From Paramicrosporidium saccamoebae KSL3 (Eukaryota > Fungi > Cryptomycota): a DNA stretch of 5,089 bases. The position numbers and the translations under genes were made by a program. How positions within the stretch are numbered: the stretch's first letter is position 1; each line of letters opens with the position of its first letter. The stretch lies in NCBI GenBank assembly GCA_002794465.1, contig MTSL01000009.1, forward strand, positions 1 to 5,089, read 5' to 3'. Below are positions 1 through 5,089 of this stretch, in pieces. Under the pieces are notes generated by a model. The model was not told the DNA's origin, made no database searches, and saw nothing but the letters and a program-made list of their open reading frames with translations.

Positions 1-2
1 TA

Positions 3-674
3 TTGCTCTTTGTGGACCCCACCGAAGTCGCTCGTTGTCGAGAGTGGTTCGTAAAATGCGCGACCATGCTGGAAGTCGTCGCCACGGCCAAGGATGGGGC
101 GCTAGGAGACGCCCTCCAGTATATTTGGGAGGATGATGTGCTCTCCCGGAGGATCCGATTGGATCTGACGGTTGATGCCATGAAGCGCATGGACGCTGAG
201 GCGAGGCAGGCACTTGGCGTTGCCCTTCACGCCAAGTCGCCCGATGATCCATGGCTTGAGGAGCATCTACCGGCGCCGCCAAAGAAGAAGGACGGTACAA
301 CGTGCAATGCAATTACCGAGCCTCCGAAGAATCTCACTTTTGGCACGTGGTACCAAGCGGACACTTTTGCAGAGTGTCGATTGTGTAGATTTCGACCAGT
401 AGAGAAGCCGTTCCTGCAGTATGGCATGAGATTTCTACAGGCGACGCTTCAAAGAGCCTATTATTGCAAATTCTGTAGATATTGGACCCTCAAGCTTGGA
501 TTGGTATCAGATCCTGTACCAGTAGAAAGTGAGACTAAGGAACCCGGGCATACCAGCACCGCTGACAATAAGCTCGAAAAAGCAAACAGGCATGACAAAG
601 AAGCTATTAGGAATACAAGGGACGAAGGCATCAGTGAAGAAGGCCCTTCAGCTCGAGTAAATGGCACTAATTAA
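3..674 (+). CDS. Gene A copy 1, 5'-truncated by the window edge. Uncharacterised protein with a CxxC-x26-CxxC putative Zn-binding motif and an acidic/basic disordered tail
   Basis: Open frame from the window edge to TAA 672-674; the track's 'M' is TTG (Leu), not a start. About 67% aa identity (66/98) to reconstructed A2 over the first 98 aa. VKCATMLEVVATA differs from A2 only at five synonymous sites. CRLC starts at 375 and CKFC at 465. Confidence 0.85.
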   Translation: MLFVDPTEVARCREWFVKCATMLEVVATAKDGALGDALQYIWEDDVLSRRIRLDLTVDAMKRMDAEARQALGVALHAKSPDDPWLEEHLPAPPKKKDGTTCNAITEPPKNLTFGTWYQADTFAECRLCRFRPVEKPFLQYGMRFLQATLQRAYYCKFCRYWTLKLGLVSDPVPVESETKEPGHTSTADNKLEKANRHDKEAIRNTRDEGISEEGPSARVNGTN

Positions 675-675
675 A
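670..675 (+). promoter_or_regulatory. Possible polyadenylation signal ATTAAA overlapping the gene A stop
   Basis: ACTAATTAAAAA is conserved at the same position in copy 2 (ATTAAA 3358-3363). It is a variant signal in AT-rich context, so support is weak. Confidence 0.35.
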
Positions 676-992
676 AAATTCCATTCTACAATTCGAATAA
701 TTATATTGGTAGGATCATATCTGATTGGGCAATGGTGAGCGCATAAAATAGCTCCTCAATGTGCAGTATTACAGTTCCAAGATGTAGTTCTGAAAAGAGT
801 TAGTGAATGGGTATTTGGGGAGTTAGATTCATGGGAATCATAAACTTTCAAAAAACTGAGCAGTCTTAGTCTATTTAAATCATAGCGATGCTTGATTTCT
901 GCACTGATTTTAGCGTATGCGCTTGACTCCTTTGTTGTCTGATTACCCAAGACATAGGAATGTTTTTGACATGAAGCTCTCATGCAGACGTC

Positions 993-998
993 TTTATT
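993..998 (-). promoter_or_regulatory. Polyadenylation signal AATAAA for B1
   Basis: TTTATT on the + strand, about 40 nt past the B1 stop. It is positionally conserved in copy 2 (3855-3860) although the surrounding spacer has diverged. Confidence 0.6.
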
Positions 999-1037
999 GA
1001 ATATTACAGCAACTAACAGAACGATATATATGTTTCG

Positions 1038-1850
1038 CTATGCTTCCAGGCCAAGCAGTTCCGGATTCATCAGTAAACGACAACACTGACACTGCCTTTC
1101 CGCTTCTCTCATGAACCAAGATCGTCTTGTATAGTGATTAAATATCACCACCAGGTAATGTGTCAGCAATAATTCACCTCCCGGTCCCTCCAGAATACAG
1201 TTCATGAAACCAAGGAATTGCCGAGTGCACATCTTCCCGTCCAGGAACATCTTGTCCTTCCACAGATAAGGTTCTCCGAACCGAAGAATGACTGTGTGCA
1301 GCTGCCCTGCCAGAGAAAACCCCATTATGAAGAAAAGAACGGCGCCAATACCGAAAAAGTAGCCTGCACCGGACACTGCTATCAGTAGTACGAGTGGGAT
1401 GGCATCGGTGGATAGAACAGCAAGCCAACCCGTCCACTTACTAAACTCGCTCCTGTCGCCGAGGGTAACGTGTCGCTCCCTCAAACAGTCAACTTTGTCC
1501 CATGGATGATAATAACCGAGTGCCAATGAATTGGGCCTGTCCCAAACCGAAAACAGGAATCCAAGATGCTTCAAGTCATGCAGGCCATCAGTTTTTTTTT
1601 TACCGGGACGAATCTTGGCAACGATAAAAGAGCGAATACTGAGTCGCGTAATGAGCCAGTAGAATAAGGGATATGGCACAAGGCCGACCCAGATGGAAGC
1701 ATACATGATCCATCCCCAGAAGGGATAGCAAATATTGACAATGTTCCACACTGTGAGTAACACCAAGAGAGCATCGAGAATAACTGCGAAACATTTCACC
1801 AGTTTTAGCGCAGTTGTATTTCCCTTGGCTGGTCTGAAAGTGACATACAT
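1038..1850 (-). CDS. Gene B copy 1: uncharacterised 270 aa integral membrane protein (about 4 TM, two hairpins) with a Cys/His-containing C-terminal region
   Basis: ATG at 1850 to TAG at 1038. Hydrophobic stretches at about aa 21-41, 44-67, 139-160 and 162-184. About 72% identical to B2 with the frame preserved (one 3-nt indel). TATA upstream and AATAAA downstream. The exact start or first exon is uncertain. Confidence 0.88.
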   Translation of the reverse strand: MYVTFRPAKGNTTALKLVKCFAVILDALLVLLTVWNIVNICYPFWGWIMYASIWVGLVPYPLFYWLITRLSIRSFIVAKIRPGKKKTDGLHDLKHLGFLFSVWDRPNSLALGYYHPWDKVDCLRERHVTLGDRSEFSKWTGWLAVLSTDAIPLVLLIAVSGAGYFFGIGAVLFFIMGFSLAGQLHTVILRFGEPYLWKDKMFLDGKMCTRQFLGFMNCILEGPGGELLLTHYLVVIFNHYTRRSWFMREAERQCQCCRLLMNPELLGLEA

Positions 1851-1968
1851 TGTGGAACGGAGAAAGCGGAGTAGCTTCGCATATATCGTTGTCCAATGGG
1901 AGTGACTCCTGAATAATAACGTGGGATGGCTATTTATAAGCAGTGTGACTATTGGTCCATCAAACTAA
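1851..1968. promoter_or_regulatory. Compact bidirectional promoter between B1 and A2
   Basis: 118 bp between divergent ATGs. TATAAATA on the - strand at 1931-1938, CCAAT on + at 1893-1897 and on - at 1951-1955, TGACTC at 1903-1908. Nearly identical to 4716-4835. Confidence 0.65.
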
Positions 1969-1987
1969 ATGTTATTGGTGCCAAAAA

Positions 1988-2041
1988 GTAATACCACGCA
2001 TCTGATCACTCTCTGCTAATTTAACAACTATGGCAAAATAG
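1988..2041 (+). other. Intron 1 of gene A2 (54 nt, GT-AG)
   Basis: GTAATA donor, GCTAAT branch at 2015-2020, TAG acceptor. Same length and signals at 4855-4908. Confidence 0.55.
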
Positions 2042-2124
2042 ACTGAACGGGTTGCGAATTCCCCAACAATCAGTCCAGGGGAAGATTAGGCCGATTGAAG
2101 CACCAATCTGATGACACCATTTGG

Positions 2125-2177
2125 GTACATTGCACACTCGCTGCTTGAATAGATATTGATAAGCTAATGTGATGCAG
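2125..2177 (+). other. Intron 2 of gene A2 (53 nt, GT-AG)
   Basis: GTACAT donor, GCTAAT branch at 2163-2168, GCAG acceptor. The paralogous intron 4992-5044 keeps length and signals while its interior has diverged and the flanking exons are conserved. Confidence 0.8.
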
Positions 2178-2195
2178 AATCATGAAACTGCTGAA

Positions 2196-2257
2196 GCACA
2201 ATTATTAACCTCAACAGCTCCATAATTGTGCACCACCAGCCAGTCTCATCTCTGTAG
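2196..2257 (+). other. Putative intron 3 of gene A2 (62 nt, non-canonical GC-AG)
   Basis: Pyrimidine-rich acceptor CTCATCTCTGTAG directly precedes the open frame starting at 2258. The donor GAA|GCACAA (copy 3 GAA|GCACGA at 5063) joins NHETAE to VTIERY in phase. The donor is weak. Confidence 0.4.
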
Positions 2258-3854
2258 GTGACTATAGAACGCTATGAGGGCATTGATGCAGATATTATCC
2301 CCAACTTCCCCTCCCCCCTCGAGAGGGTTTACAGCACACTCCTCATGAAATGCCAACAGCTCGGTCTCGAAGATTTCAATACGGAGTGTTTCCACGGACT
2401 GTCCTTCCGGAACACGGGCGGCTTTGGGGGGAAGGCTGCCTCTTATTGCTCTTCATGGGCCCCACCGAAGCCGCTCGTTGTTGGGTGTGGTTCGTCAAAT
2501 GCGCGACTATGCTGGAAGTTGTCGCTACGGCTGAGGGGAAGCACTTGGGAATACTATCTAATATATCTGGGGAGATGACGTGTTCCCGCGGAGAATCCGC
2601 TTGGATCTGACAATTAATGCCATGAAAGCCCATGGACGACGGATCGCGGCAGACACTTGGACTCGTCCTCCACACCAAGTCGCCCGGTGATGTCTGGGTT
2701 GGTGCGCACCTGCCGGCACCTCCGAAAAAGGAGGGCGGTGCGGCCTTAGAATCGCCTGATCTCCCTGCCAGTGTCGCCATTGATCACTGATATCAAGGAG
2801 GCACTTTAGCAGAATGTCGACTGTGCAGATTTCGGCCATCACAAGTGACACTGCTTAGCAAAGTCGCCTTTAGGCTGCCTAAACTGACGCTTGGGTGGAG
2901 CCCGTGCTGTGCCATCTGTGGATATCACACCCTCAAGCCCGAGTTGGTACTAAATCCTGCACCGGTCGTGACGGAGGATAAAAAATCGGGGGACACTATA
3001 CGTAACGGCAATAGCAAGGCAAAATGCGAGTATGTGGGAACTACCAATGGAGACACAAGCCGTCACAATTGTGAAAGTAACGAGACCAAGAAACCTGGGA
3101 GTGCTGGTACCATTGACGACAAGCACGAAAAGCAAGCGGGCACGACAAACGAGCTGTTAAACAACATCAACTTATTATTGGCGAGTCCGACTCAGATAGC
3201 GGTCCCATAGCCCAGTTTGGTTATATTAAGAATGGCCACCTATAAAGAAACCATATGCTTTAATAAAAGTAAGCTCACCCATCAACAGAAGCCATTAGAA
3301 ATACAAGGGACGGAGACGTTAGTCAAGAAGGCCCTTTAGTTTGAGTGAATAGCACTAATTAAAAATTTCATTCTACGAAACCTGGATAATTACATTAGTA
3401 GAATCCTGCCTAATTGATCAATAGTGTGTACACAAAGTAGCTACTCAATGTACAATATTATTACAGTTCCATTGTGGATTCAGTTTTAGAACATATTTCT
3501 ACGTATCGATAACTCCGACAAGAGTTAGTGAAGGGACGGCTGGCAAGCCGTACGACATCCGATATTCTAGACTCTGACGCGTGATTTGGAAGGGTTTGAA
3601 ATCGGGGACAGTTTCAGTGCGTGCACATCCTATAAATGCTTGATTCCCACGTGTTTGTAGAGCATTTATATTGTCTGGCCATTCATACAATAACGACACT
3701 GGGCCACGATTGGAATAGAATGAAAGCGGGAAAGAAAGGAGAGGAAAGATACAATTGGACGCGGGGAGCCTAGTGGCCGGCTCGGAGCATGCTTCAAGTA
3801 AAATTCATTGACTCTTGGTATTGGTGTTTGATGTAATGTTCTTTCCATAAGCTT

Positions 3855-3860
3855 TTTATT
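3855..3860 (-). promoter_or_regulatory. Polyadenylation signal AATAAA for B2
   Basis: TTTATT on +, about 40 nt past the B2 stop, same spacing as for B1. Confidence 0.6.
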
Positions 3861-3899
3861 AAATACTGCAGCAAACATCAGAAAGGTATCTATGGCACA

Positions 3900-4715
3900 T
3901 TACGTTTCCAGGTCACGCAGAACTGGATCCATCAATAGACGACAACACTGACACCGCATTTCTGATGCTCGTAAGAACCACGAGTGTCTTGTGTAATGGT
4001 TGAACAGCAATACATCGTTTAGTGTCAGAAACAATTCACCTTCAGGTCCCTCCAGAACACACATCATGGCGCCGAGGAATTTCCGGGTACACATTTTTCC
4101 ATCCAGGAACATTCGATCTTCCCACAACTCGGGTATAACCAGACGAAAAATAGTCATGCGCAGCTGTTGCGCCAAGGCAATACCCATTATAAAGAAGATA
4201 ACGACACCGATGCCGAGAAAGTAGCCAGTACCGGATAGTGCAATCGGGAGTACGAATGGGATAGCATCGGTGGATAGGACGACAAACCAACCCAACCATT
4301 TGCTAAGCTCTCTTCTATCACCAAGAATAATATGTCGCTCTCTCAAACAGTCAACTTTGTCCCATGGATGATAATAACCAAGTGTCAATGAATTGGGCTT
4401 ATCCCAAACCGAAAACAGGAATCCAAGATGCTTCAAGTCATGCAGGCCATCAGACTTGAGTTGATCTCCAGGGCGAATCTTGGCGACGATAAAGGAACGC
4501 ATGCTAACGCGTTCGATGAGCCAGCAAATGAATGGGAATGAAACAAGGCCAACCCAGGTGGAGGCATAAATGATCCACCCCCAGAAAGGGTAGCACAGAT
4601 TGACAATCGTCCACAGTGTGAGTAAGAACAAGAGCACATCAGGAGCGATGGCGAGGCATTTCACCAGCCTTAGCGTAGTTGTATTTCCCTTGGCCGGTCT
4701 GAAAGTGGCATACAT
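3900..4715 (-). CDS. Gene B copy 2: uncharacterised 271 aa integral membrane protein (about 4 TM)
   Basis: The first in-frame ATG is at 4715 (MYATFRP), matching the B1 ATG. The track start at 4763 is TTG and is not in frame in B1. Stop TAA 3900-3902. No disruptions. Confidence 0.88.
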   Translation of the reverse strand: MYATFRPAKGNTTTLRLVKCLAIAPDVLLFLLTLWTIVNLCYPFWGWIIYASTWVGLVSFPFICWLIERVSMRSFIVAKIRPGDQLKSDGLHDLKHLGFLFSVWDKPNSLTLGYYHPWDKVDCLRERHIILGDRRELSKWLGWFVVLSTDAIPFVLPIALSGTGYFLGIGVVIFFIMGIALAQQLRMTIFRLVIPELWEDRMFLDGKMCTRKFLGAMMCVLEGPEGELFLTLNDVLLFNHYTRHSWFLRASEMRCQCCRLLMDPVLRDLET

Positions 4716-4835
4716 ACTGTGGAACGGAGAAAGCGGAGTAGCTTTGCATATATCGTTGTCCAATGGGAGTGACTCCTGAATAATAACGTGGGATGGCTAT
4801 TTATAGACAGTGTGACTATTGGTCCATCAAACTAA
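4716..4835. promoter_or_regulatory. Bidirectional promoter between B2 and A3
   Basis: TATAAATA on the - strand at 4798-4805. Near-identical to 1851-1968. Confidence 0.65.
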
Positions 4836-4854
4836 ATGTTCTTGGTGCCAAAAA

Positions 4855-4908
4855 GTAATACCACGCATCTGGTCACTCTCTGCTAATTTAAAAACCGTGG
4901 AGAGATAG
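4855..4908 (+). other. Intron 1 of gene A3 (54 nt)
   Basis: GTAATA donor, GCTAAT at 4882-4887, TAG acceptor. Paralog of 1988-2041. Confidence 0.55.
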
Positions 4909-4991
4909 ATTGAGCTGGCGGCGATCCCCTCAACAATCAGTCCAGGGGAAGATTTGACCGATTGAAGCACCGATCTGACGACACCATCCGG

Positions 4992-5044
4992 GTAAATTCC
5001 CCACTTATTGCTTAAATAAACACCACTATGCTAATGTGGTGCAG
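4992..5044 (+). other. Intron 2 of gene A3 (53 nt)
   Basis: GTAAAT donor, GCTAAT at 5030-5035, GCAG acceptor. Paralog of 2125-2177. Confidence 0.8.
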
Positions 5045-5089
5045 AATCATGAAACTGCTGAAGCACGACCATTAGTCTCAACAGCTCCA

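Follow-up and report, generated by a model that had tools for sequence, protein, structure and literature searches.

A tandemly amplified head-to-head pair of orphan genes, A and B, from Paramicrosporidium-like Rozellomycota

The closest described relatives of the genes that we report here are in Paramicrosporidium saccamoebae, an intranuclear parasite of Saccamoeba that belongs to the Rozellomycota and has a genome of 7.28 Mb with 46.9% GC (PMC5701793). On contig MTSL01000086.1 of this organism (assembly GCA_002794465.1; locus L008 below), the gene PSACC_01160, which is annotated merely as "hypothetical," is part of an array of two alternating kinds of genes, which we will call A and B. We analyzed a stretch of DNA of 5,089 bases (the window) that contains true homologs of these genes, in the same head-to-head A/B tandem array. 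A encodes a protein with four predicted transmembrane (TM) segments, and B encodes a protein with a pair of CxxC motifs. Both arrays are mixtures of intact and decayed copies, and their A promoters have the same motifs (TAAAAATAG, TCAGGAGT, and ATTGGA). The two arrays belong to different clades of the family, and B is intronless in the P. saccamoebae array but has an intron of 34 nucleotides (nt) in the window's clade.

Beyond these homologs, the most similar systems are those that resemble the A/B pair in layout or in distribution. The large gene families of microsporidia, such as NemLGF (PMC5423893), are also from obligate intracellular parasites of the Rozellomycota-Microsporidia lineage, and they also combine TM segments and many paralogs with a lack of homologs beyond their clade. 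However, they have no sequence relationship to A or B, and the unit in the window pairs two different genes. In Caenorhabditis elegans, the adjacent genes peel-1 and zeel-1 encode a four-pass TM toxin and its antidote, which has a TM domain and a soluble domain (PMC3144186). A and B are similarly two adjacent novel genes, for a four-pass TM protein and for a protein whose N-terminal TM domain is fused to a soluble domain. They are not homologous to peel-1 or zeel-1, though, and B's soluble domain does not resemble zyg-11. Also, peel-1/zeel-1 is a single insertion/deletion polymorphism, while the A/B cassette is tandemly amplified and old. Finally, the wtf and Spok families are multi-copy and lineage-restricted, and the wtf products are multi-pass TM proteins (PMC10721834), but these are single-gene poison-antidote systems, whereas the cassette comprises two separate genes. 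In profile and domain searches, neither A nor B showed any similarity to wtf, Spok, or het-c/pin-c.

The window contains 2.15 copies of a repeat unit of 2.4-2.9 kb, with gene A on the minus strand and gene B on the plus strand of each unit. From left to right, the order is B1, a spacer, A1, a control region, B2, another spacer, A2, and a third control region. B1 (3..674, plus strand) is cut by the left edge of the window: its open reading frame (ORF) comprises the last 223 codons of exon 2 and is open to the stop codon, while everything N-terminal to this (the TM-encoding exon 1, the intron, and the beginning of exon 2) lies beyond the edge. A tail-to-tail, AT-rich spacer of 363 bp separates B1 from A1 (1038..1850, minus strand), which is an intact and intronless gene for a four-TM protein of 270 amino acids (from its ORF, homology, and hydropathy). 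The core promoter and leader of A1 (1851..1957, minus strand) are followed by the rest of the divergent A/B control region (1958..2244), in which alignment shows homology of 2165-2238 to sequence that precedes the B promoter at locus L003. B2 (2258..3369, plus strand) is a pseudogene of exon 2 of B. A2 (3900..4715, minus strand) is again intact and intronless and encodes a four-TM protein of 271 amino acids (ORF, hydropathy, and tree), and its core promoter and leader are at 4716..4824 (minus strand). AATAAA polyadenylation-type signals are found 40 nt 3' of the stop codons of A1 (993..998) and A2 (3855..3860), both on the minus strand. Just 372 bp of the third unit, all of it intergenic, are inside the window (4718-5089): the divergent control region at 4825..5089 is collinear with 1958-2212, and the window ends before the coding sequence of B3. 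The original prediction was of a head-to-head cassette repeated at least three times; the tandem repeat is confirmed, but the window has two A genes and two B genes, with B1 truncated, rather than three copies.

The direct repeats in the window are spaced by 2443 bp in the B part and by 2862-2867 bp in the A part (start to start). The spacings differ because the second unit has about 420 bp extra, most of which is accounted for by the low-complexity tail of B2 and the 3' intergenic spacer. In the alignment of the two units, DNA identity ranges from 47% to 97% per 100-column block. The differences have a transition/transversion ratio of 2.0 and are symmetric in direction. Repeat-induced point mutation was considered as the source of this divergence and rejected, as the TpA/ApT index (0.70) and the second index (1.32) are normal and the transitions are symmetric, so the divergence between the units is of the ordinary kind. 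Scans of the window for tRNAs and Rfam families found neither.

Both A and B are orphan families, as had been predicted: searches for domains, profiles, PDB entries, and folds found only members of the families themselves. We compared a profile of A (built from 14 sequences) to 1.84 billion representative proteins and found only 12 proteins, all of them family members. These 12 relatives (among 5.8 billion clustered proteins) are from the JGI samples 3300042203 and 3300042204 and from one Logan run, and A1 is 58-64% identical to them. Scans with the A profile of collections of metagenome contigs, viral contigs (2.9 million), and bacterial/archaeal contigs found no relative. The profile search for B found six proteins. 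Scans of A1, A2, B1, the pieces of B2, and full-length relatives against Pfam, NCBIfam, and PADLOC gave nothing at or near threshold, and sequence-profile searches of PDB gave only noise with E > 0.1 (the zinc fingers of BCL11A for B and subunit H of the V-ATPase for A). With the predicted structure of B, Foldseek found no fold neighbor; the best E values were 1.5 in PDB and 0.8 in BFVD. The AlphaFold2 (AF2) model of A is poor, with a predicted local distance difference test score (pLDDT) of 46.5, and was left out of the fold search. Like the microsporidian families, then, A and B have TM domains (by hydropathy and AF2 helices), and no homologs outside their clade were found in the profile and contig searches. 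At least 20 distinct A sequences are present in the two JGI samples, taken together over the organisms in these samples, and the A family has at least two deep clades.

The pairing of A and B is both real and old. In every locus with enough flanking sequence, B-homologous DNA is found beside A, and the linkage of the two genes is conserved. They are adjacent and alternate in tandem arrays in the window and at loci L001, L003/4, L005, L007, L008, L010, L011, and L012. Synonymous divergence (dS) is matched between neighboring A and B pairs: it is 0.57 for A and 0.68 for B within L007, 0.25 and 0.29 within the P. saccamoebae array, and 1.08 and 1.13 between L007 and P. saccamoebae. This implies that A and B duplicate and diverge as one unit, which agrees with the prediction that the two genes duplicate together. 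The paralogs are old (dS from 0.8 to saturated), and the two families have an identical, narrow taxonomic range.

Alternatively, A and B might be functionally unrelated and remain neighbors via a compact bidirectional control region, with co-amplification because the repeat happens to span both. This would account for the A genes that stay intact where the neighboring B is dead (A1/B2 in the window, and L008) and for the foreign upstream neighbors of A at the edges of some arrays (L005 and L009), and the genome of P. saccamoebae is compact, with 76% gene space (PMC5701793). But the pairing has outlasted saturated synonymous divergence and spans two deep clades, neither family was found alone in any locus with enough flank, and both families share exactly one narrow taxonomic range. 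We consider mere co-location to be somewhat unlikely.

The cassette is a birth-and-death multigene family. Roughly 12 of the 15 A copies that we saw are open, but just 7 of the 14 B copies, so B decays more often than A. Among the decayed copies are one with a nonsense codon (L003), one with a frameshift (L001), and B fragments in L008. A is not always intact either: both genes are dead in L012, and A is frameshifted in L006. In three cases, an intact A is beside a dead head-to-head B: A1 and B2 in the window, the A gene at 8018 in L008, and the A gene at 12434 in L008. This indicates that A does not need its own B, and it is contrary to the proposal that the copies are cognate pairs that carry different specificities.

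The decay of B2 can be traced in detail by alignment with L003. A deletion of about 480 bp took the CCAAT and TATA boxes, the 5' untranslated region (UTR), all of exon 1, and all of the intron except for its last 13 nt of 34 (CTCATCTCTGTAG; 2245..2257, plus strand). In what remains of exon 2, the frame shifts three times, near 2440, 2560, and 2630 (between the frames of 2258, 2287-2607, 2562-2687, and 2626-2787), and there is a nonsense codon (TGG to TGA) at 2788-2790. The tail contains another premature stop and about 250 bp of extra low-complexity sequence. We compared the pieces of B2 separately, by three-frame translation, piecewise blastp, and the unit alignment, and never read through stops. 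B2 is a pseudogene. This qualifies the description of the cassette as a 4-TM gene plus a zinc-motif gene: A1 and A2 are open and have four hydrophobic segments, and B1 is open and has the CxxC pairs, but B2 is dead.

The distance between the genes had been given as 118 bp, on one promoter. This figure is an artifact: it leads from the end of A1 at 1850 to the ATG at 1969, which opens an ORF of only 16 codons. The homology to exon 2 of B starts at 2258, which is 408 bp from the ATG of A1. In intact relatives, the distance from ATG to ATG is 487-518 bp, and each gene has its own TATA box (seen for A in the window and for B in L003 and L001). In an intact unit, A and B are thus head to head, with about 0.4-0.5 kb of control region between them.

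As to the lineage that carries the cassette, the only named relative of B is PSACC_01160, which supports the predicted fungal origin, in the broad sense. By blastp, B1 is 44% identical to the B of L003, 34% identical to PSACC_01160, and 28% identical to the B of L007; its alignment to the B of L008 covers 182 amino acids at 34% identity (E = 3e-25). PSACC_01160 and the B of L007 are 55% identical. The A genes of P. saccamoebae are missing from its annotation. Using tblastn, we found three intact ORFs of 274 amino acids on the minus strand of L008 (7200-8024, 8695-9519, and 11616-12440) that the public record leaves without a gene call, which explains why protein searches with A match nothing in NCBI. 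A1 is 45-47% identical to them over 259-269 amino acids (E = 1e-75 to 1e-77). The order of genes in this array is a decayed unit, A, a B fragment, A, B (PSACC_01160), A, and a frameshifted B at the end of the contig, so that 3 A genes and 1 B gene are intact. In a tree of the A family, the P. saccamoebae genes, L007, and P0013 form one deep clade, while the window and most of the metagenome copies form the other. Given these relatives, the cassette appears to be confined to Rozellomycota that resemble Paramicrosporidium and that parasitize amoebae from within the nucleus.

The flanks of the arrays also bear on whether the cassette could be cargo of a transposon or a giant virus that was gained inside the amoeba host and then amplified in the genome. 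The array of P. saccamoebae adjoins PEPCK/CitMHS and Sybindin genes, and the edge of a metagenome array adjoins an NSA2-like gene (Ribosomal_S8e family, E = 5e-38). These are ordinary genes, which implies that the A/B family resides in ordinary nuclear DNA. The GC content of the window (46.5%) is also that of the host, at 47.2% for contig MTSL01000086.1 and 46.9% for the genome of P. saccamoebae (PMC5701793). A repeat search of the window found no terminal or inverted repeats, no locus contains a transposase, integrase, or capsid gene, and there are no relatives in the 2.9 million viral contigs or among the BFVD folds. Also, the copies are in head-to-tail tandem rather than dispersed. A mobile or viral origin would fit with orphan proteins that are multi-copy and occur patchily in few samples, and one A paralog has a weak, sub-threshold match to a holin-like Pfam family (E = 0.03), but overall we view this origin as very unlikely. 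At the edges of the metagenome arrays, the NSA2-like gene is at 2-550 of L009, with A 378 bp downstream, and an acidic low-complexity ORF (179-646 of L005) lies beside A. Array boundaries vary between loci.

Turning to the proteins, A1 and A2 are sisters in the tree of the A family. The copies are about 72% identical in protein and, by block, 65-97% identical in DNA, instead of about 70% diverged as had been predicted. The four hydrophobic segments of A are at about 20-42, 46-68, 141-163, and 166-190 (by hydropathy and from the AF2 helices). The loop between TM2 and TM3 is basic, has 70 amino acids, and contains an invariant H-x-G-F-L-F-S-V-W block. The C-terminal tail has 80 amino acids and ends with W-F-x7-C-x-C-C, and the outer loops would be tiny, at about 5 residues each. 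From hydropathy and the positive-inside rule, we infer that both termini of A are inside, so that the TM2-TM3 loop and the tail would be cytosolic.

A is under purifying selection: the ratio of nonsynonymous to synonymous divergence (dN/dS) is 0.21 between A1 and A2 and 0.07-0.20 relative to other family members. For intact B genes, dN/dS is 0.27-0.35, and the protein changes about 1.5-2 times faster than A does. Across both families, intact copies range from 0.07 to 0.35, with averages of 0.14-0.35; with paralogs as old as these, the fast divergence that the original prediction had proposed is not supported. A side observation concerns codons 91-120 of A (1464-1563 versus 4326-4425 of the window), where synonymous divergence between A1 and A2 is 0.11, versus 0.49 gene-wide. 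This stretch covers an invariant K-H-L-G-F-L-F-S-V-W...G-Y-Y-H-P-W-D-K block, and it suggests either constraint at the nucleotide level or gene conversion.

The promoter of A is more conserved than its coding sequence. In A1, the order of the motifs is GACCAATAG (1949-1957), TATAAATAG (1930-1938, the TATA box, minus strand), TCAGGAGT (1905-1912), and CATTGGAC (1891-1898), with a leader of about 40 nt between CATTGGAC and the ATG. A2 has the same four motifs, at 4816-4824, 4797-4805, 4772-4779, and 4758-4765. The promoter and leader are 97% identical between the two units (1859-1958 versus 4726-4825), while synonymous sites in the coding sequences differ at 49%. The TATA-like box, TCAGGAGT, and ATTGGA were kept in every member of the family that we examined, including the P. 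saccamoebae copies, whose proteins are just 45% identical. The identity of the promoters could reflect strong constraint on cis-regulation, gene conversion confined to this tract, or a combination of the two. Across the family, we find the signals of eukaryotic genes (TATA, CCAAT, AATAAA, and the 34-nt GT..AG intron in B), and A and B are real eukaryotic genes.

Full-length B proteins have about 375 amino acids and begin with 2-3 TM helices, which are followed by an all-alpha domain and a putative C4 knuckle. The intact B of L007 and of P. saccamoebae is an intronless ORF of 374-377 amino acids. In the window's clade (L001, L003, L010, and L012), exon 1 has about 125 codons, which include the TM helices, and is followed by the 34-nt intron and exon 2. 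The intron is GT..AG, in phase 0, and is at the same codon in all four paralogs (L001 2381->2348, L003 1965->1932, L010 2271->2238, and L012 2323->2290, all on the minus strand). It is not present in the clade of P. saccamoebae and L007, and once it is removed, the product can be aligned to the intronless B with no gaps. Bacterial-style gene calls break B in two at this intron. We considered whether the change of frame between exon 1 and exon 2 in L001 and L003 was a pseudogenizing frameshift, but rejected this because the same 34-nt GT..AG segment is found at the same codon in four paralogs.

The AF2 model of full-length B has a pLDDT of 71.9 and a predicted template modeling score of 0.67. 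It contains helices at 2-22, 33-54, and 58-96 and an all-alpha core at 109-275 (about 170 amino acids, pLDDT 80-92). The C4 region is modeled with a pLDDT of 30-66 and does not match any Pfam model. In B1, this zinc-knuckle-like motif (348..476, plus strand) consists of W-Y-x6-E-CRLC (the CxxC is at 375-386), a 26-residue spacer, CKFC (465-476), and a conserved x-Y-x-T-L. The four cysteines, the tryptophan, and the TL are invariant in every open B sequence, and the spacing across B is CxxC-x26-30-CxxC. Since the conserved motif W-x-x-x-G-x3-E-CxxC...CxxC-x3-TL is present, and given the identities above, B is homologous to PSACC_01160. A basic stretch follows the last TM helix, and the positive-inside rule would put both the helical domain and the C4 knuckle of B in the cytosol.

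After the second CxxC, B has a low-complexity tail that is rich in K, E, S, G, and T and is very variable in length (2940-3340 in the window, 1056-1349 in L003, and about 1000-1540 on the minus strand of L010). The tail is long and highly basic in L010. The last residues, E-G-P-S-x-R-x-x-G-x-N, are conserved within the window's clade. The TATA box of B precedes the likely start codon by only about 30-35 nt (about 2762-2726 in L001 and 2349-2307 in L003, minus strands). The 5' UTR would then be just a few nucleotides long, similar to those of microsporidia. In the L001 ORF, the first in-frame ATG is so near the TATA box that it could not be used. We also noticed that the tail of A1 (amino acids 245-257; 1080-1118, minus strand) and the knuckle of B1 (amino acids 116-128; 348-386, plus strand) have in common a tryptophan, an aromatic residue, and cysteines at +9/+12: the first knuckle of B reads W-Y-x6-E-C-x2-C, and the tail of A reads W-F-x7-C-x-C-C. 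Comparing the profiles of A and B showed no homology, and the resemblance over 18 columns (E = 0.16) is not significant. It could be due to chance or to a common metal or partner site.

What does the cassette do? The original prediction proposed a poison/antidote or allorecognition module. The prediction was to be given up if homologs of A and B were unlinked or were single-copy housekeeping genes, and we instead saw linkage and multiple copies. The poison/antidote reading thus survives these computational checks, but it is not supported, and a selfish or defense function of the cassette is conjectural. In such a selfish element, which might act post-segregationally or by meiotic drive, a membrane protein would kill any cell or spore without the linked partner. 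Several of the properties described above are expected of such an element: the two genes are tightly linked, conserved as a pair, and co-duplicated; both encode novel membrane proteins, whose 4-TM and TM-plus-soluble layouts parallel peel-1/zeel-1 (PMC3144186); and the family is lineage-restricted and variable in copy number. P. saccamoebae is probably diploid and has a complete set of genes for meiosis, which in principle makes drive possible, although sex has yet to be seen in Rozellomycota (PMC5701793).

The pattern of decay constrains which gene could be the toxin. An intact A beside a dead cognate B excludes A as the toxin with B as its copy-specific antidote. The reverse assignment, with B as a decaying toxin and A as a retained antidote, is compatible with this and with the more frequent loss of B. 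But with average dN/dS of 0.14-0.35 and ancient paralogs, there is no sign of an arms race, and a module that was kept across clades with just 45% identity between their A proteins would be long-lived for a driver. Furthermore, A and B have no sequence similarity to known drivers in profile searches, and B has none in the fold search. Together, these considerations make a two-gene toxin-antidote element unlikely. A more specific version, in which an ancient drive element of an early-diverging fungal parasite uses B, with its TM helices and zinc knuckle, as the killer and the tetraspan A as the antidote, would be a tandemly diversified analog of peel-1/zeel-1 built from two new folds; we regard it as distinctly unlikely.

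Allorecognition, or vegetative incompatibility of the het type, can account for just the generic features of the cassette, which are a linked, multi-copy, and lineage-specific pair. No HET (PF06985), NACHT, WD, STAND, or NLR-type domains were found in Pfam scans (E ≤ 1), and selection is purifying, not balancing or diversifying. The lineage that carries the cassette is unicellular and intranuclear and does not undergo hyphal fusion (PMC5701793). For a parasite of this kind, allorecognition is implausible, and we consider a het-type locus to be extremely improbable.

We tentatively favor the view that the cassette of this intracellular parasite is a lineage-specific membrane module of two genes that evolves by birth and death. 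Under this proposal, the array would expand and contract by unequal recombination between units. A and B might be co-expressed, from the divergent control region, as subunits of one hetero-oligomeric membrane complex, with the conserved soluble parts of both proteins on the cytosolic side. A single B may serve several A paralogs, or A may act alone. The likeliest role, by analogy with the clade-specific TM families of microsporidia (PMC5423893), would be in parasite-specific membrane biology, and not as a selfish killer.

Several observations weigh against this proposal. The topology that we predict for A rests on hydropathy and the positive-inside rule, for a protein whose AF2 model is poor. 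If that topology is right, almost nothing of A would be exposed outside the membrane, which is a poor fit to a family of surface proteins that face the host. Families of the type described by Reinke evolve fast (PMC5423893), while the A/B family is under clear purifying selection (dN/dS of 0.14-0.35). Also, the reference contig has only 3 intact A genes and 1 intact B gene, and the metagenome copies may come from one or several organisms.

Even so, these are two protein families without relatives among about 1.8 billion representative proteins, and they have remained paired through saturated divergence. The result is a new two-gene orphan family, whose tetraspan member A is wholly absent from the sole reference annotation, and it would join a known phenomenon, the lineage-specific expanded membrane-protein families of intracellular parasites. 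If A and B do form a complex, it would be a new parasite-specific membrane machine. If they are instead a toxin and its antidote, no earlier example would exist in this region of the tree. Either way, the annotation can be corrected, with three missed genes of P. saccamoebae and a class of 34-nt introns, and the family can serve as a marker for Paramicrosporidium-like organisms in metagenomes.

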